64,000 nt of DNA. It comes from Obrimoposthia wandeli (taxonomy: Eukaryota). Under the pieces are notes generated by a model, which worked only from the letters and a program-made list of their open reading frames with translations, did no database searches and was not told where the DNA came from. This document shows, piece after piece, positions 14,559-56,343 of the stretch (position 1 is its first letter; every line of letters begins with the position of its first letter). The position numbers and the translations under genes are program-made. The stretch spans positions 1 through 64,000 of the forward strand of contig CDROCS010000506.1 in the NCBI GenBank assembly GCA_977020255.1. Reading direction: 5' to 3'.

Positions 14559-14795
14559 TCAGTTCAACACTGTAATAGCCAGTTCATTGTCATCATTCCA
14601 ACGGTACCAAACATCCTTGTTTGATTGTCCGAGTCGAGGACGCTCACTGATGCTTGTCGATATTTTACCTTTGGCTATCCACAATGCTAGCATTGCATCA
14701 ATACCATCTTCGCTAATGCCAAACTTTTTTGCTAATTCAGTTCTGCCGGTTTTTCCGTTAGCAACAAGATGATCTTTCAGGCGCGTTAAAATCAT
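14559..14795 (-). CDS. feoC: FeoC-like winged-helix protein
   Basis: MILTRLKDHL...ELAKKF...IDAMLALWIAKGKI, located downstream of feoB. Confidence 0.8.
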   Translation of the reverse strand: MILTRLKDHLVANGKTGRTELAKKFGISEDGIDAMLALWIAKGKISTSISERPRLGQSNKDVWYRWNDDNELAITVLN

Positions 14796-17070
14796 ATTGG
14801 CCCTTCTCCTCTTGTAGTTTTACTTTGTTACCTTGTTTTTTCAACAGCGCCACAACAATCAGCATTAGCACACTGAAGAAACTTATCCAGCCGATGCTTG
14901 ATGCCGGATGCGCTGCGAACTCAGCGATTTGATAGTACATAGTCGCAACAAAGTAGCCTAAAAACATAGTCCAGCTAGCAATGAATACGGCAAACGGACG
15001 ACCAAATTCACGTACATAAGCGCCCATTGCCGCCGCACAAGGCGTGTATAATAGAATAAACAATAAGAAAGCAAAGGCTGCTGCGTCAGAACCAAAGCTG
15101 TCTTTTAAGTTACCAAACAGCGTCACATCAACTTCTTGATCGTCAGCAACTGCACCCATGTCGGTCAAATCACCCACATCAACGCCCAGTGGATCTGAAT
15201 AACTTAAGTCGGCTAAGTTGGCAGGGATTGATAATACCGCTTCTTCTAAACTCGCGAGTAAATCAAATTCGGCATCGTCACCTTCTGCGCTTGAGTACAA
15301 GCTATTCAAGGTACCAATCACCGCTTCTTTGGCAAAAATACCGGTAATAATACCCACAGTTGCTTGCCAGTTATCAGCTTGAATACCAATGGGGGCAAGT
15401 AATGGTGTTGCCACTTGTGAGACTTGCGACAATATCGAACTTTCACTCTCTTCGTTGCCAAAGCTACCATCGGTACCCAGTGAGTTAAAGAAGCTTAAAA
15501 ACGCCACCACTAAGACAATCGTTTTACCGGCACCAAAAACAAAACGTTTTAGTTTTTGCCAAGTAATAATCAGCATGTTTTGCATAGTTGGTAATTCGTA
15601 ATCAGGCATTTCCATGATAAAGCTATCACTGCGACCTGGATATAGGCTCCAGCGTAATAACATCCCCGTGAATACCGCCACCAAAATACCAATAATGTAT
15701 AAGGCAAAGACAATATTCTGACCATGTTCAGGGAAGAAGGCCGCTGAAAATAAGGCATAAACAGGTAATCGCGCACCACATGACATAAACGGAGCCATTG
15801 CTGCGGCTAATCGACGTTCACGCTCATGCTCTAATGTACGTGTCGCCATAATCGCGGGTACGTTACAACCAAAACCAAGCACCAAGGGTACAAATGCTTT
15901 ACCTGGTAGGCCGATTTTTTGCATTACTTTATCAAGTACAAACGCAGCACGCGCCATGTAGCCTGAGCTTTCAAGTAATGACAAGAATAAATACAAGCAA
16001 CCAATCACCGGAATGAAAGTCGCAACCGTTTGAATACCACCACCAATACCATTGGCAATAATAGTCACTAACCACACGGGTAACAGGCCGTCGAGCAGAT
16101 AATGGCCGCCATCAACAAGGACACTGCCAAAGCTGATATCGAAGAAATCGATAAATGCGCCACCAATGTTTATCGAGAACATAAACATCAAATACATCAC
16201 CGCAAAGAAGAACGGGATGCCAATGTATTTATTCAATACGACTTGGTCGACTTTATCACTGAATGAACGGCTTAACTTACCTTCCTGACGACGTACTTTA
16301 TTACATAACTGGTGTAAGAAGGTGTAACGGACATTAGCAATATGGAAATCGGTTTCAACTGACTCGGCAACTTTATTCTTTACTTCTGACACCTGCATCA
16401 GGATATCTAAACTGAGTAAGTCACTCACTAAACTGTCATTCTCTAATGCGCGAACAGCCAGCGAACGAGGCGCTACATTATGCTCATAAAAGTGAATATC
16501 TAATTCGCTGATCGCCGCTTCTATTTCTGGACCATAGTTCATCGCCAGCGGTGTTGTTGTTACACCTTTTTGTACTAATGAATGCAGATTTTGTTTAAAT
16601 TCGCTGACTTCACTTTTAGCATTGGCAGACAAGGCTAATACTGGGCAACCAAGGGCTTTCTCTAACTTTTTAATATCTAATACTTGGCGTTGACGCGCCA
16701 GCACATCCATCTTGTTTAAGACCACAACCATAGGTCGGCCTAACTCTCGCAGTTGTAACGTCATGTACAAGCTACGTTCTAGGCATGACGCATCAACGAC
16801 GTTAATGATCAAGTCCGCAGCATGATTTAATGCCGCTTTCGATGCGATCATTTCATCGACACTGTTCACTTCATTACTGCTGTCTAAAGCATAGATGCCG
16901 GGTAAGTCCGTTAATAAAAACTCATCACCAGCGTGACCATAACGCCCTGTTTTTTTATCAACAGTCACACCAGCCCAGTTACCAACACGTTGGTTAGCAC
17001 CCGTTAATGCATTAAATAAAGTGGTTTTACCGCTATTTGGGTTACCAATAGTAAGGATTTGATACAACAT
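14758..17070 (-). CDS. feoB: Ferrous iron transporter B
   Basis: GNPNSGKTT, VGNWAGVTV, DLPGIY, NKMD G-domain motifs, and PLVLGFGCNVP and PFMSCGARLP gate motifs. Confidence 0.97.
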   Translation of the reverse strand: MLYQILTIGNPNSGKTTLFNALTGANQRVGNWAGVTVDKKTGRYGHAGDEFLLTDLPGIYALDSSNEVNSVDEMIASKAALNHAADLIINVVDASCLERSLYMTLQLRELGRPMVVVLNKMDVLARQRQVLDIKKLEKALGCPVLALSANAKSEVSEFKQNLHSLVQKGVTTTPLAMNYGPEIEAAISELDIHFYEHNVAPRSLAVRALENDSLVSDLLSLDILMQVSEVKNKVAESVETDFHIANVRYTFLHQLCNKVRRQEGKLSRSFSDKVDQVVLNKYIGIPFFFAVMYLMFMFSINIGGAFIDFFDISFGSVLVDGGHYLLDGLLPVWLVTIIANGIGGGIQTVATFIPVIGCLYLFLSLLESSGYMARAAFVLDKVMQKIGLPGKAFVPLVLGFGCNVPAIMATRTLEHERERRLAAAMAPFMSCGARLPVYALFSAAFFPEHGQNIVFALYIIGILVAVFTGMLLRWSLYPGRSDSFIMEMPDYELPTMQNMLIITWQKLKRFVFGAGKTIVLVVAFLSFFNSLGTDGSFGNEESESSILSQVSQVATPLLAPIGIQADNWQATVGIITGIFAKEAVIGTLNSLYSSAEGDDAEFDLLASLEEAVLSIPANLADLSYSDPLGVDVGDLTDMGAVADDQEVDVTLFGNLKDSFGSDAAAFAFLLFILLYTPCAAAMGAYVREFGRPFAVFIASWTMFLGYFVATMYYQIAEFAAHPASSIGWISFFSVLMLIVVALLKKQGNKVKLQEEKGQYDFNAPERSSCC

Positions 17071-17297
17071 TAAACGACCTCGACTTCAATTTGTTGCGCG
17101 AGTTGCTTACGAATTGCAACAGACATACCGCGAACAGATATTTGTAAAGGATCTCCCATAGGGGCACGACGCATCAGCGTTACTTCGGTCTGTGGCAATA
17201 CGCCCATCACCATTAACTTCTTGCGTGTGTCAGCAGGTAAAGCTGACATATCGGTAATTGTAGCGACAACACCATCGTTTAATAACGCTAACTTCAT
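17070..17297 (-). CDS. feoA: Ferrous iron transport protein A
   Basis: KLMVMGVLP...RRAPMGDP, directly upstream of feoB. Confidence 0.95.
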   Translation of the reverse strand: MKLALLNDGVVATITDMSALPADTRKKLMVMGVLPQTEVTLMRRAPMGDPLQISVRGMSVAIRKQLAQQIEVEVV

Positions 17298-17335: not shown

Positions 17336-17376
17336 ATTCTACGCAGGCAGTATAAATTACTCTTGATATGAATCAA
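17336..17376 (-). promoter_or_regulatory. FNR-dependent class II promoter of feoABC
   Basis: Perfect TTGAT-ATGA-ATCAA at 17363-17376 and -10 TAGAAT at 17341-17336 on the minus strand. Confidence 0.75.
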
Positions 17377-50959: not shown

Positions 50960-52294
50960 ATGGCAACAGGTTCAAGAGCACAATTTTCGTCTCGTTTTGG
51001 CTTCATCATGGCCGCCGCAGGTTCTGCTGTAGGCGTCGGTAATATATGGGGTTTTCCAACGCAAGCAGCCAGTAATGGTGGCGCTGTATTTTTACTTGTT
51101 TATTTGTTAATGGTATTTGTTCTCGCGTATCCATTATTAGTAGCCGAGTTAACGATTGGCCGTCATGGTCAAGCAAACCCAATCAAATCAATCAAATCAA
51201 TCTGGCCTAAACAAAAAATGGCCGCAACAGGCCTCGGTATTGCAGGCATGATTGCGGTATCAATGATCTTAAGCTTCTACGCGATTGTAGCAGGTTGGTT
51301 GTTAGGTTCATTACTGTCACCCTTCTTTACGCTTGTTGGACTAGATGCGGCAGCTGAATGGGTGAATGCATTCACTACCGAACGTAACTTAGTCATGATG
51401 ATTATCTTTATGGTTATGACGGTTCGCGTGGTAAGAAGTGGTGTGACTGACGGTATCGAGCGCTGGTCTTCACGTTTAATGCCTATCCTGTTCATCTTAT
51501 TTGGTTTGATGACAGCGTATATCTTAACGTTAGACGGCGCGTCTGAAGGGCTTGAAATGTACCTTATCCCCGACTTTTCACACCTAAGTTCAGACTTAGT
51601 GATCAGTGCGATGGGACAAGCGTTCTTCTCATTATCATTGGGCGTGTGTGCCATGATGGTATACGGTTCATACTTAAGCAAAGAGACTAACATTCCACAA
51701 ACAGCGGCATACGTTGCCTTGCTTGATACTGGTGTTGCATTTGGTGCTGGTCTACTGATTTTACCAGCCATGTTTGTGGCACAGAAAAACGGTGTGGAAA
51801 TTTACGACGCAGCCGGTGCACTACTCAGTTCAGATACATTAGTGTTCACGGTACTGCCAGCAATGTTCGATAGCATGGGTGCTATGGGTATTGTTATCAG
51901 CATCCTATTCTTCTTGTTAATGCTTATTGCTGCCCTAACATCATCAATTGCCATGTTAGAAGTACCGGTATCATGTGCAACCGAAGAATTGAATAAAGAC
52001 CGTAGTACCGTAGTTTGGTGGATTGGCGGTATTATCACGCTCGTTTCAACAATTATTATCTTCAACTTCGCGGATCTATTCGGCTTAGTGATCACAGCAA
52101 CAACAGTGTATGCACAGCCGATTCTTTCGCTACTGTTTGCATTACTTGTGGGTTGGGTATGGCGTCGTGATCAACTGCTTACCGAGATCAAACAAGGTAA
52201 CCCTGAACTAGAAGATGGTTTATTCTGGAAAATATGGCCTTGGTATGTACGTGTTGTATGCCCGGTGCTGATCATCCTAGTACTTGCATCTTAG
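50960..52294 (+). CDS. Sodium-dependent transporter (NSS/SNF, LeuT-like)
   Basis: AAAGSAVGVGNIWGFP, QAFFSLSLG, AALTSSIAMLE. Confidence 0.93.
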   Translation: MATGSRAQFSSRFGFIMAAAGSAVGVGNIWGFPTQAASNGGAVFLLVYLLMVFVLAYPLLVAELTIGRHGQANPIKSIKSIWPKQKMAATGLGIAGMIAVSMILSFYAIVAGWLLGSLLSPFFTLVGLDAAAEWVNAFTTERNLVMMIIFMVMTVRVVRSGVTDGIERWSSRLMPILFILFGLMTAYILTLDGASEGLEMYLIPDFSHLSSDLVISAMGQAFFSLSLGVCAMMVYGSYLSKETNIPQTAAYVALLDTGVAFGAGLLILPAMFVAQKNGVEIYDAAGALLSSDTLVFTVLPAMFDSMGAMGIVISILFFLLMLIAALTSSIAMLEVPVSCATEELNKDRSTVVWWIGGIITLVSTIIIFNFADLFGLVITATTVYAQPILSLLFALLVGWVWRRDQLLTEIKQGNPELEDGLFWKIWPWYVRVVCPVLIILVLAS

Positions 52295-52322: not shown

Positions 52323-52368
52323 CAACAGCAGAACAAATATTGCTAGAATTTAAACCGGTAATTAAATA

Positions 52369-52423
52369 ACAAAATGGCGGCTACGTCTCTATTATTACAA
52401 TAGAACATAGCCGCCATTTTTGT
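52369..52423. terminator. Bidirectional terminator
   Basis: ACAAAATGGCGGCTA...TAGCCGCCATTTTTGT between convergent genes. Confidence 0.8.
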
Positions 52424-52478: not shown

Positions 52479-52874
52479 CTACTTATCTAATTCGTGTAAA
52501 ACCAATTCTTTATAACCAATCAGACCTAGAATATCTTCATTTTCAATCACTGGTGCATTAGATAAACCAAAGCGCTCAAATAAACGGGCACAATAACGAA
52601 TATCCATTTCTGGCGGTACTGACACAATTGGCTTTGCCATGACTTCATAAATGTTAACGCGATCGGGTGAACGATCTTTGGCTAAGACTTGCTTGGCAAT
52701 ATCGGATAATACCAAAATACCGTAAGCATCATGTTGATCACGCTTATTCACAATGATCACTTTAGAATCATGCTTTTTCATGGCATCAATCGCTTCACGA
52801 ATGGTCTGCATACCGTCCATACAAATATAATTTTGGGTCATAACAGCATTGGCTTTAATTGGATTTTTGGTCAC
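52479..52874 (-). CDS. Stand-alone CBS-pair protein
   Basis: Tandem CBS motifs: VMTQNY...AYGILVLSDI...VMAKP...APVIENEDILGLI. Confidence 0.85.
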   Translation of the reverse strand: MTKNPIKANAVMTQNYICMDGMQTIREAIDAMKKHDSKVIIVNKRDQHDAYGILVLSDIAKQVLAKDRSPDRVNIYEVMAKPIVSVPPEMDIRYCARLFERFGLSNAPVIENEDILGLIGYKELVLHELDK

Positions 52875-53221
52875 AGTTCATTCTCCACAGTTTTGCTTAA
52901 TTGACTAATTTGATGATTCACACCGACCGCATCTTCAACGTCGATTTGTACCGCAATACCTGAACCTGGTTTTCCATCAAACTCACCGACTTTATTGATT
53001 TCTTCTAAAATATGTCGACTTAAATGTTCTTCAACAATAAACAATAAAACATCGCGCTGTGTTTCTAGCGTTAAACCAAAGAAGGTTTTCGATTGCTTAA
53101 GGCCTTCACCTCTGGCGTTATTAATAATAGTGGCGCCTGTTGCACCCGCACTACGTGCAGCATCCATGATCCCGTCAGTAAGACCAGCATCTACAAATGC
53201 GACGATTAATTTAAAATGCAT
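52871..53221 (-). CDS. PII-like signalling protein
   Basis: FKLIVAFV...AGATGATI..ARGEG...PGSGIA ferredoxin-like PII pattern. True start is ATG 53221 after GGAG. Confidence 0.85.
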   Translation of the reverse strand: MHFKLIVAFVDAGLTDGIMDAARSAGATGATIINNARGEGLKQSKTFFGLTLETQRDVLLFIVEEHLSRHILEEINKVGEFDGKPGSGIAVQIDVEDAVGVNHQISQLSKTVENEL

Positions 53222-53263
53222 TTTATTCTCCAACAATTCATAATTTTGACTGTGCTTTTTCTT

Positions 53264-53335
53264 GAAATAGAAACGGTTCTTGTAACAGAAACTGATTTTG
53301 TAATAGAAACGGTTCTTATAAAAATAACTGCGCTT
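53264..53335. repeat. 18-bp period tandem repeat, four units in A-B-A-B order
   Basis: GAAATAGAAACGGTTCTT / GTAACAGAAACTGATTTT / GTAATAGAAACGGTTCTT / ATAAAAATAACTGCGCTT. Confidence 0.75.
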
Positions 53336-53371
53336 GTAAAGCAACAGTAATAACACGTAAATATCCGCGAA

Positions 53372-54181
53372 CTAACTTGTCGCGGCTTTCTTGTCACGCG
53401 TACTGATCCACTGCGATATTTGTGCATACGCCATCACCGACATGATCGGGAACAAGCTTGCAAAGGCAATAAGACCAAAGCCATCGATGATCGGGTTACG
53501 TCCCGGCACCGTTTCCGCTAAACCTAATCCGAGCGCGGCCACTAACGGTACTGTTACCGTCGATGTTGTAACACCGCCCGAGTCATACGCTAACGGGATA
53601 ATTAATTTTGGTGCGACTAATGTTTGCGCAACCACGACCACATAACCGGCCATGATGTACCAATGGATCGGGTCGCCAACAACAATACGGTAGCAACCAA
53701 GCGAGATACCTATCGCCACACCCAAGGCAACAGATAAACGTAAACCCCAAACACCAATCGCGCCACCTGAAACTTCATTGGCTTTAATCGCCACTGCAAT
53801 CAAAGACGGTTCCGCAATCGTAGTAGCAAAACCAATAAAGAATGCGAATAAATAAACCCAGTAATAATCAGTCCAAACCAGTTCGCGAATGCCTTCAGTA
53901 ACAACGTCAACATTGTTCACACTGGCCAGAAAAGCCGGATCTGTGAGTTGTTGCGCCATCAAGCGTCCAAGTGGAAATAACGCCCACTCTAGACCAATCA
54001 AAAACAGCGACAAACCAATCAATACCCATAAGAAACCCATGAGCACACGGCCTAGATTCGGCAGGGGTTTACGAATAACAGCAAACTGAAAACCAAATAA
54101 TATCGCCGCAATCGGCAACACATCATGAAACGTGGTCGCAATCGTCGAACCAATCTGACTTAACATTTCGATAAAGGTCAT
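53372..54181 (-). CDS. DUF1538 family membrane protein (copy 2)
   Basis: [12 protein letters not shown] and [17 protein letters not shown] motifs in a multi-TM protein. Confidence 0.85.
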
Positions 54182-54918
54182 AGCATCACCATGCCATAAG
54201 CCATTACAAAGATCATCGGATTAAGCGACGCTAACGCGATAAGACCAAAGCCATCAATCATCGGATTTCTACCTTTAATAGACGAAGCAAGACCAACACC
54301 CAATGCTGTTACCAGTGGTACTGTTATCGTCGATGTTGTGACACCGCCGGAATCATAAGCAATACCAATAATTTCAGGCGGCGCAAACATAGTCATTATC
54401 ATCACCAGCACATAACCGCCAATAATGAACCACTGTAGTGGCCAGCCTTTAATAATACGCAGTACACCCACAGCAATCGCAATACCGACACTCAAGGCCA
54501 CACTCATTCTTAAGCCTTGGGCATAATCATCCATAGCAACTTGGGTTGTACCGATAAGATCACCACTGGCAGCCACTCTCGCCGCTTCCGCAGCAACGGC
54601 GATTAATGCCGGTTCAGCAACTGTAGTCCCAAAACCAAGACAGAATGCAAAAATCAATAACCAGCCAACGCTGCCTTTACGCGCAAACGCATGCGCCATT
54701 GATTCGCCAATAGGAAATAAGCCCTGTTCAAGGCCATGGATAAAGAAGGTGAGTCCTAACAATACAAACAGTACGCCAATAAGCAGTTGGCCGACGTTCG
54801 GTAGCGGTTGTTGAATAACCACTAACTGAAAGAATAAGATCACAACAATGATGGGAGCAAGATCCCTGATACTGCCCAACATAAATTTAAGTAGGGTTTT
54901 AAACGTGTTAACCAACAT
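54178..54918 (-). CDS. DUF1538 family membrane protein (copy 1)
   Basis: [12 protein letters not shown] and [17 protein letters not shown]. Start is ATG 54918 after AAGGAGG. Confidence 0.85.
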
Positions 54919-54946
54919 AGCCTCCTTGATTAGATTAATCACGCGG

Positions 54947-54987
54947 ATATTAGCGTATTGGAAAACTAAAAAATTGATCTAAATCAA
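54947..54987 (-). promoter_or_regulatory. FNR-dependent class II promoter of the DUF1538 operon
   Basis: Perfect TTGAT-CTAA-ATCAA at 54974-54987 and -10 TAATAT at 54952-54947. The 21-nt spacing is identical to that at feoA. Confidence 0.7.
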
Positions 54988-55084: not shown

Positions 55085-55234
55085 GTGATTCATTAACCCA
55101 ACGTGTCATAGCACTAAGCGATACACCTAAACTATCAGCAGCAGCTTGCCTGGTATATCCTTGCTCTGTAACGAGTTTACTGCACCTAGTTTGAATTCAG
55201 TTGTAAATATCGGACGTTTAAAATTTGTATTCAT
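55085..55234 (-). mobile_element. IS3-family transposase OrfA remnant
   Basis: RBS GAGGTG and ATG 55234: MNTNFKRPIFTTEFKLGAV, then after a one-base shift KLVTEQGYTRQAAADSLGVSLSAMTRWV (IS3 OrfA HTH). No OrfB or terminal repeats seen. Confidence 0.75.
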
Positions 55235-55263
55235 AATCACCTCTAATTAACATTATACTTGAC

Positions 55264-55683: not shown

Positions 55684-56343
55684 CTAAGTCTGCTTGGTTA
55701 ATGCTAACTTGATACCAAACAACAGGAACAACCCACCAGTGAATTTAGTGAGGTAGGTGGTTAAGCGCTGGTTATGTTTAAGCTTGCCGCCAATAGAAGA
55801 CGATGACCAAGCCAAGATATGACACCAAATCATCGCGTTAATATTAAAAATAACACCAAGAAAAATAAAGGACATGGCTTTATGCGGGTAATCCATTGCA
55901 ATAAATTGTGGCACAAATGCCAGGAAGAACAAGGCTACTTTGGGGTTTAACACATTAGTTAAAAAACCTTGGAAGAAGATATGTGACAATGAAGTGTTTT
56001 TACTATCCACACTATCTGCACTCGCTACAGCACCCGTATTTATACTAGGCTTTTTAGTCTTTGCAAACAGCATACTAAAACCTATGTATAGTAGATAAAT
56101 ACAGCCTATCACCTTCACCACGGTAAAAGCCATTGCAGATGTAGCTAAGATAGCAGACAAGCCGAATGCAGCAGCAAATACATGTACCAATGTACCGGCA
56201 CCAATACCAAAGGCACCAACAGAACCAGCACGAAAGCCTTGCCCCGCACTGCGTCCAATAACATATAAAGAATCAGGACCAGGGATCAAATTGAGCATGA
56301 TGCCTGATACCACAAATAACCACAGTTCTGTTACTCCGAACAT
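55684..56343 (-). CDS. LysE/RhtB family efflux translocator
   Basis: PGPDSLYV, GCIYLLYIG, FFQGFLTNVLNPKVALFF. Confidence 0.9.
   Translation of the reverse strand: MFGVTELWLFVVSGIMLNLIPGPDSLYVIGRSAGQGFRAGSVGAFGIGAGTLVHVFAAAFGLSAILATSAMAFTVVKVIGCIYLLYIGFSMLFAKTKKPSINTGAVASADSVDSKNTSLSHIFFQGFLTNVLNPKVALFFLAFVPQFIAMDYPHKAMSFIFLGVIFNINAMIWCHILAWSSSSIGGKLKHNQRLTTYLTKFTGGLFLLFGIKLALTKQT

Follow-up and report, generated by a model that had tools for sequence, protein, structure and literature searches.

A conserved umpA-umpB-PII-CBS cassette in a Moritella contig: a putative energy-gated cation/proton antiporter with a candidate FNR promoter

A stretch of 64,000 nucleotides (nt) from GenBank assembly GCA_977020255.1 (contig CDROCS010000506.1, positions 1 to 64,000; hereafter the window) carries a four-gene unit encoding two paralogous DUF1538 membrane proteins, a divergent PII-like protein, and a protein with a pair of CBS domains. 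The assembly, deposited under Obrimoposthia wandeli, is multi-organism (1.35 Gb, 6912 contigs). Proteins named from Moritella species share 96-97% identity with the PII-like protein, and the window lies on a Moritella contig. We lean towards reading the unit as a cation/proton antiporter that is induced by anoxia and gated by two adenylate sensors, and as the Moritella version of a widespread, self-contained umpA-umpB-PII-CBS cassette. More tentatively, the cassette may represent an unrecognised class of PII-controlled transporters: an antiparallel cation/proton antiporter of 7+7 helices, its membrane fold not represented in the PDB, jointly gated by a PII-like trimer and an AMP-type CBS dimer, and wired by FNR to anoxia in Moritella-like bacteria. 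The membrane family is known and has been characterised once; the accessory pair of PII-like and CBS proteins, the gene fusions, and the inverted topology described below were not in any paper we found.

The four genes are kept together across a wide range of bacteria. Scanning of species genomes with an alignment of the PII-like protein gave 80 loci, 78 of them with enough flanking sequence to be informative, and umpA, umpB, PII, and CBS genes were found on one strand and in the same order in 78/78. These loci span many gammaproteobacterial genera, including Vibrio, Thalassotalea, Photobacterium, Hahella, and Halioglobus, and relatives of the PII-like protein are 66-100% identical across marine Gammaproteobacteria. 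The reverse search started from the membrane genes, with a UmpA model applied to 301 genomes of the related order and a DUF1538 model applied to the window's own assembly. It recovered the cassette in 31 of 32 two-gene loci, a count that includes two loci (L084 and L085) truncated immediately after the PII gene; in the one exception, L092, the PII gene is present and no CBS gene lies within the remaining ∼350 nt. No fifth conserved gene was found beside the cassette, recurrent neighbours such as toxRS in Vibrio being lineage synteny. None of the 14 control genomes searched, E. coli and B. subtilis included, contains the cassette.

Gene fusions connect the same components. UmpA and UmpB are joined in proteins of ∼500 amino acids (aa), followed by divergent PII and CBS genes, at loci L082, L119-L121, and L123. 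At L119 and L120 (genomes G053 and G214) the order PII-umpA-umpB-PII-CBS is directly followed by fused umpAB-PII-CBS, giving a total of three PII-like and two CBS genes in ∼5 kb. A triple fusion of UmpA, UmpB, and PII (656 aa; two DUF1538 domains and P-II at 36.8 bits in Pfam) is represented by at least 120 clusters at 90% identity, mostly from Campylobacterota, and P-II is carried by 75% of the members of one ESM Atlas cluster. Judged by gene order and fusion, the PII-like and CBS genes are obligate partners of umpAB, and the triple fusion argues strongly for an action of the PII domain on the cytoplasmic face of the membrane unit.

Some loci depart from this pattern or extend it. On one Campylobacterota contig (L081, 3022-3615; G000:C2751) a TrkA_N/TrkA_C (RCK) gene, its open reading frame (ORF) cut by the locus end, precedes the triple fusion on the same strand, a possible link to K+ handling. 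A fused DUF1538-DUF1538 gene on a contig of 25% GC (L137, G000:C6367:2297-3697) contains 19 in-frame TGA codons, so TGA is a sense codon there (code 4 or 25); phmmer found no PII or CBS gene adjoining it. A third DUF1538 class, with two DUF1538 domains per protein, comprises L122 (G195:C1) and ORFs like it, 600-680 aa long. The L122 protein (684 aa) has an N-terminal extension of ∼86 aa and an inter-domain insert of ∼120 aa, and Pfam detected no P-II or CBS domain in it.

The initial annotation of this DNA, made from the sequence alone, regarded the transport system as uncharacterised and its substrate as unknown, which is wrong for the membrane pair. Both membrane proteins match PF07556 (DUF1538) over their full length, at 236 and 221 bits against a gathering threshold of 22.6, and they are 50% identical to each other. 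In NCBIfam, where equivalog models of the pair exist, the first gene matches UmpA (NF041627) at 378 bits and the second UmpB (NF041628) at 354 bits, and each subunit scores ∼175 bits better on its own model than on that of its partner. The layout is also that of UmpAB, with two adjacent paralogous genes, A then B, overlapping at stop and start codons. The two NCBIfam models are derived from UmpAB of Halomonas zhaodongensis, whose two DUF1538 genes overlap and encode 254 and 271 aa, and which was shown in 2017 to be a Na+(Li+,K+)/H+ antiporter (Meng 2017, PMC5484666). Both Halomonas genes are required to rescue E. coli KNabc, the two proteins co-immunoprecipitate as a membrane heterodimer, and everted vesicles display pH-dependent Na+(Li+,K+)/H+ antiport (PMC5484666). 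The published clone stopped directly after umpB (PMC5484666), and the PII and CBS genes were therefore never assayed with Halomonas UmpAB. Elsewhere, UmpAB homologs have been reported in the genomes of saltwater cable bacteria (PMC10030654), and DUF1538 is among the features that predict optimal growth pH (PMC13255231). A function has thus been assigned in the literature to the membrane family, but the link to PII and CBS proteins has not been described, and no paper was found that connects DUF1538 or PF07556 with either.

The window pair resembles Halomonas UmpAB in size (∼246/269 aa against 254/271 aa), in having seven predicted helices per subunit, and presumably in being a heteromer; the heteromeric transporter proposed from the shared motifs of the paralogs is what was found in the sole characterised homolog. 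Features absent from the published account, which is silent on topology, are the opposite orientation of the subunits, the fusions, and FNR control (PMC5484666).

The distribution of positive charges suggests how the two subunits are arranged. Lysine and arginine in UmpA loops average 8.3 in odd and 2.4 in even loops, with a bias of +3 to +9 in 58/58 sequences, whereas in UmpB the values are 4.35 and 8.6, with a bias of -2 to -8 in 23/23. Because the positive-inside bias is strictly opposite in UmpA and UmpB, the simplest reading is an antiparallel 7+7-helix heterodimer in which UmpA would be N-in/C-out and UmpB N-out/C-in. The fused proteins are consistent with this arrangement: their linker is short, acidic, and helix-free, which fits a periplasmic location, and the PII domain is attached at the C-terminus of the B half, in agreement with a cytoplasmic C-terminus of UmpB. 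The alignment used for the fused proteins contains fused sequences only, and a mixed alignment with separate UmpA and UmpB rows was discarded because UmpB was misplaced on the first half. Opposite bias in paired genes, together with fusion, is a classic route to inverted-repeat transporters. Antiparallel pairs of small transporters, such as EmrE/EbrAB-type small multidrug resistance (SMR) proteins and Fluc/CrcB, share with UmpAB the adjacent homologous genes, the opposite positive-inside bias, and the natural fusions. The UmpAB subunits, by contrast, come from an unrelated family and are far larger, each with seven helices of which two are broken.

The AlphaFold2 model of window UmpA is confident, with a predicted local distance difference test score (pLDDT) of 90.1 and a predicted template modelling score (pTM) of 0.84. 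It contains nine helices, two of which are helix-break-helix elements at AEP and GGVTTST. The AEP motif and a second motif, recorded initially as common to both paralogs, are present in both and invariant in 81 UmpA/UmpB sequences, and the invariant acidic and hydroxyl motifs at the helix breaks presumably form an ion site. Comparison of the model with solved structures gave no significant match in Foldseek (best E 0.39), a best VIA-align Z of 6.2 confined to a 65-residue hairpin, and DUF1538 clusters alone in the ESM Atlas. An SbtA-, NhaA-, Amt-, or other known transporter fold for DUF1538 finds no support in these values, and the missing PDB match does not by itself prove a new fold.

Of the two putative sensors, the CBS protein is a Bateman module (PF00571 twice, 61 bits), and its residues 6-125 align with the CBS pair of Microcystis CBS-CP12 (5nmu, E 3.5e-23), the closest solved relative. 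The isolated CBS pair of CBS-CP12 is a dimer with one AMP bound, and the full-length protein binds AMP but none of ADP, ATP, and cAMP (PMC6142219). An AMP-type energy signal may reasonably be supposed for the window protein as well. It differs from CBS-CP12 in its membrane-transporter partner and in lacking a CP12 domain, and for the latter reason hexamerisation and PRK control are not expected.

The PII-like protein is divergent and has no significant sequence match in the PDB. The glycine motifs noted in the initial annotation are there, as RGEG and GSG, and its remark that the T-loop lacks the GlnB-type tyrosine was borne out, since GEGLKQSKTFFGLTLETQR contains no tyrosine and neither do the corresponding segments of any of 16 aligned relatives. 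Structural matches come from the homologous domain of a fused protein (model with mean pLDDT 77), not from the window protein. The best is SbtB (Foldseek E 9e-4; VIA Z 11.2, root mean square deviation 3.0 Å, 92 residues aligned), and CPII (VIA Z 10.6), GlnK1 (Foldseek E 1.4e-3), and the PII protein of the NrtBCD complex (VIA Z 10.0) also match.

Two known systems offer themselves for comparison. As in the cassette, the PII-like gene of SbtA-SbtB is co-transcribed with a Na+-linked secondary transporter, and an adenine-nucleotide-sensing plug is its working model. The cassette differs in its DUF1538 neighbours (the UmpA model shows no similarity to the SbtA fold), in the extra CBS sensor, in an identity of ∼20%, and in its heterotrophic hosts. 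With GlnK-AmtB the cassette shares the PII fold and an operon-encoded PII trimer that would be expected to insert its T-loops into the membrane partner. It is set apart from that pair by the lack of the Tyr51 site, of the canonical B-loop, and of the C-terminal ATP motif, and by a partner unrelated to Amt.

Upstream of the four genes lies a perfect TTGAT-N4-ATCAA palindrome, one of two such sites in the window against 0.17 expected. The second (17363-17376) is located upstream of genes at 17070-17297 (75 aa) and 14758-17070 (770 aa), which we take to be feoA and feoB from their size and their earlier label; feo operons are FNR-activated in E. coli. At both promoters the box is separated by 21 nt from a -10-like hexamer, TAATAT for ump and TAGAAT for feoA, and neither has a -35 hexamer, so the initial observation of a perfect FNR palindrome at the feoA spacing was confirmed. 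This spacing would fit a class II activator site with the box centred near -41.5, and the ump promoter shares with FNR class II promoters such as that of feoA the box, the 21-nt spacer, the -10 hexamer, and the lack of a -35 hexamer, with the difference that its box is lineage-restricted. A second Moritella strain from the same assembly (L088) has the identical box and spacing despite different DNA further upstream. Ahead of the cassette at L002, L006 (Thalassotalea algicola), L017 (Psychrosphaera), and L029, the box has one mismatch and again stands 21 nt from the -10-like hexamer, and perfect boxes are also present at L084, L085, L021, L042, and L048. Altogether, boxes with at most one mismatch occur in 14 of 78 orthologous upstream regions against 4.4 expected (P ∼2e-4, a conservative value because the background includes the boxed sites themselves), and six of the 14 have a -10-like hexamer at a spacing of 21-22 nt. 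The same assembly encodes a Moritella-type FNR (contig C1101; 457 bits, cut-off 228), which clusters with FNR of M. viscosa and M. dasanensis, and FNR is also encoded in two other genomes with boxed promoters. Lineage-specific FNR control of the ump operon is therefore plausible on promoter architecture. To our knowledge, an alkali-cation/proton antiporter is not a recognised member of the FNR regulon.

Taken together, we propose that an antiparallel UmpA/UmpB heterodimer would exchange Na+ (also Li+ and K+) for H+, with ion coupling through the invariant Glu of AEP, the Asp of YDSGG, and a cluster of Thr and Ser residues where the two helices are broken. On the cytoplasmic face, a PII-like oligomer and a CBS dimer would bind and, according to the adenylate or energy status that they sense, open the antiporter or plug it. 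We infer this gating from the invariant synteny and the fusions, by analogy with GlnK-AmtB and SbtB-SbtA. When oxygen is scarce, FNR would raise ump expression in Moritella and some related genera. A speculative rationale is that anoxia stops the respiratory Na+ pump; Na+ export would then cost scarce proton-motive force, and gating by energy status would be useful.

Several observations weigh against this proposal, and they bear on its promoter, its substrate, and its regulators in turn. The search for FNR sites in orthologous promoters showed conservation in several related genera and absence in most: 64 of the 78, including all Vibrio and one Moritella metagenome-assembled genome (MAG), have no box with at most one mismatch. 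Among the scored candidates, no FNR gene lies on the window's own contig, and the remnant of an IS3-type transposase just upstream of the promoter indicates local rearrangement. The palindrome could accordingly be a chance or relic sequence, or the target of another regulator of the CRP/FNR family, with expression independent of oxygen, an explanation that we consider unlikely yet worth keeping in view. It has to account for a 10/10 half-site match that is rare in 64 kb, for a box-to-hexamer spacing identical to that of feoA in the same window, for the retention of both in the second Moritella strain behind different upstream DNA and in Thalassotalea, Psychrosphaera, and other loci, and for the missing -35 hexamer, as expected of an activator-dependent promoter.

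As to the substrate, the window proteins score below the NCBI equivalog cut-offs (378 < 490 for UmpA and 354 < 500 for UmpB), so that the same substrate is not guaranteed, and for this reason Na+(Li+,K+)/H+ exchange is assigned to the window pair only by homology to Halomonas UmpAB. Among 421 genomes sampled from the related order or family, none reached the UmpA cut-off, the best score being 444 bits; the loci closest to it (419-444 bits) carry the PII and CBS genes. Functional data for the family come from a single study, a heterologous screen in E. coli KNabc conducted without the PII and CBS genes. Well-studied PII proteins are gatekeepers mainly of nitrogen and inorganic-carbon transporters (AmtB, SbtA, NrtBCD), and among solved structures the PII domain is matched best by SbtB. 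It is conceivable, if rather improbable, that the cassette carries a different substrate, such as bicarbonate or another anion, ammonium, or an organic ion, that the Halomonas Na+/H+ antiport is a side activity brought out by a permissive screen, and that the PII and CBS proteins tie transport to carbon or nitrogen status. The SbtB match, however, is not clearly above those to GlnK and CPII (Z 11.2 against 10.0-10.7), and the UmpA model is unlike SbtA, Amt, or any solved transporter. The hosts are heterotrophic marine bacteria, and the flanks are devoid of carboxysome and nitrogen-assimilation genes. Independent correlations of the family with salinity and pH, and invariant membrane-embedded Glu/Asp and Thr/Ser motifs that suit cation/proton coupling, likewise favour an alkali-cation antiporter.

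The regulatory half of the proposal faces objections of its own. The PII-like protein has neither the canonical B-loop (T-x3-G-D-G-K-I-F) nor the C-terminal R-x-R, reading KPGSGIAVQI and VGVNHQ instead, and hhalign aligns it to E. coli GlnK over residues 4-34 only. Residue-level transfer of ligand contacts from GlnK failed for the latter reason, and with the GDGK B-loop and RxR missing as well, a ligand cannot be assigned to the PII-like protein. The idea that the T-loop is the most conserved part of the protein was rejected, as conservation is uniform at ∼0.8, and in the model of the fused protein the linker and the T-loop are of low confidence. The evidence for a partnership consists of synteny and fusion, which show association and not its direction. 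That the PII-like and CBS proteins are downstream signalling outputs of UmpAB, which would act as a membrane sensor or anchor ('transceptor') controlling them, is nevertheless very improbable, for although PII proteins have many soluble targets, no third partner or target gene is conserved nearby, PII is the regulator in all solved PII-transporter complexes (e.g. 7egk and 8wm7), and UmpAB alone is active in transport.

The positions of the features of the ump locus are compiled in Table 1. The gene unit as a whole (52479-54918, minus strand), delimited from the ORF listing and Pfam matches, lies 3' of the palindrome with all four genes co-oriented.

Table 1. Features of the ump locus in the window, listed in the direction of transcription.
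Feature	Position	Strand	Details
FNR-type palindrome TTGATTTAGATCAA	54974-54987	-	perfect TTGAT-N4-ATCAA match
-10-like hexamer TAATAT	54947-54952	-	21 nt 3' of FNR box; no -35 hexamer
umpA-like gene (DUF1538 subunit A, ∼246 aa)	54178-54918	-	PF07556 E 3.6e-70; NF041627 378 bits
umpB-like gene (DUF1538 subunit B, 269 aa)	53372-54181	-	PF07556 E 1.2e-65; NF041628 354 bits
intergenic umpB-PII spacer, 150 nt	53222-53371	-	18-nt tandem repeat (TRF)
PII-like gene (116 aa), divergent subfamily	52871-53221	-	PF00543 32.7 bits vs cut-off 25
CBS-pair gene (131 aa)	52479-52874	-	PF00571, two stretches, E 1.4e-16
intrinsic terminator: long perfect hairpin and U-tract	52364-52421	-	fold z -6.86

The arrangement had been described initially as four co-oriented genes in two overlapping pairs. 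Both overlaps are present, the umpB start ATG overlapping the umpA stop (ATGA, 54181-54178) and the CBS start GTG overlapping the PII stop (GTGA); the correction to be made is that a 150-nt gap joins the two pairs. The longest ORF for umpA spans 54178-54942 and opens with GTG at 54942. Promoter geometry places the start of transcription at ∼54940, inside that GTG, so the true start is likely ATG at 54918 or TTG at 54915, 3' of AAGGAGG (54927-54921). One Moritella MAG has the TTG alone of these two candidates.

The spacer between umpB and the PII gene contains a tandem repeat, identified with TRF, of an 18-nt unit (CCGTTTCTATTACAAGAA-like, ∼3.5 copies, 53259-53321, within an insert reaching to 53339). 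The second Moritella strain (L088) has (TTGTTGAA)n, repeated six times, at the same position, and the spacer is nearly absent in the other genera compared. A riboswitch or attenuator in the spacer was considered and rejected, given the lack of an Rfam match in its 150 nt, an RNA fold that is not stable (z +0.86), the strain-variable repeat, and the near-absence elsewhere. The spacer is a strain-variable insert within the operon, resembling a variable-number tandem repeat, and probably not a regulatory element. The terminator, in comparison, folds at -47.4 kcal/mol (z -6.86), with 0/200 shuffled sequences as stable. It is bidirectional and shared with a convergent gene for an SNF-family Na+-dependent symporter (50960-52294, plus strand). 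On the other side of the unit lies a gene for a LysE-family exporter (55684-56343, minus strand), and neither flanking gene is kept beside the cassette in other genera.

The stretch from the LysE-family gene to the ump promoter contains a remnant of an IS3-family OrfA transposase with a helix-turn-helix domain (55090-55238, minus strand). It is frameshifted and truncated, one frame reading MNTNFKRPIFTTEFKLGAV... and the other ...GYTRQAAADSLGVSLSAMTRWVN. Strain L088 has other DNA at this position, yet an identical FNR box.

If the proposed mechanism is true, 'valve-plug' control by PII proteins would extend from nitrogen and carbon uptake to Na+/K+/pH homeostasis, and the transporter would have been assayed without its regulators in the sole functional study of the family. 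In marine Gammaproteobacteria, many Vibrio included, the cassette is widespread, and in Campylobacterota it occurs as fusions; its absence from the control genomes, E. coli and B. subtilis among them, may explain why it has been overlooked. UmpA/UmpB is an attractive structural target, as it combines a confidently predicted fold that has no solved relative with an apparent inverted-topology heterodimer, and the natural triple fusion provides a ready-made construct for structural work.

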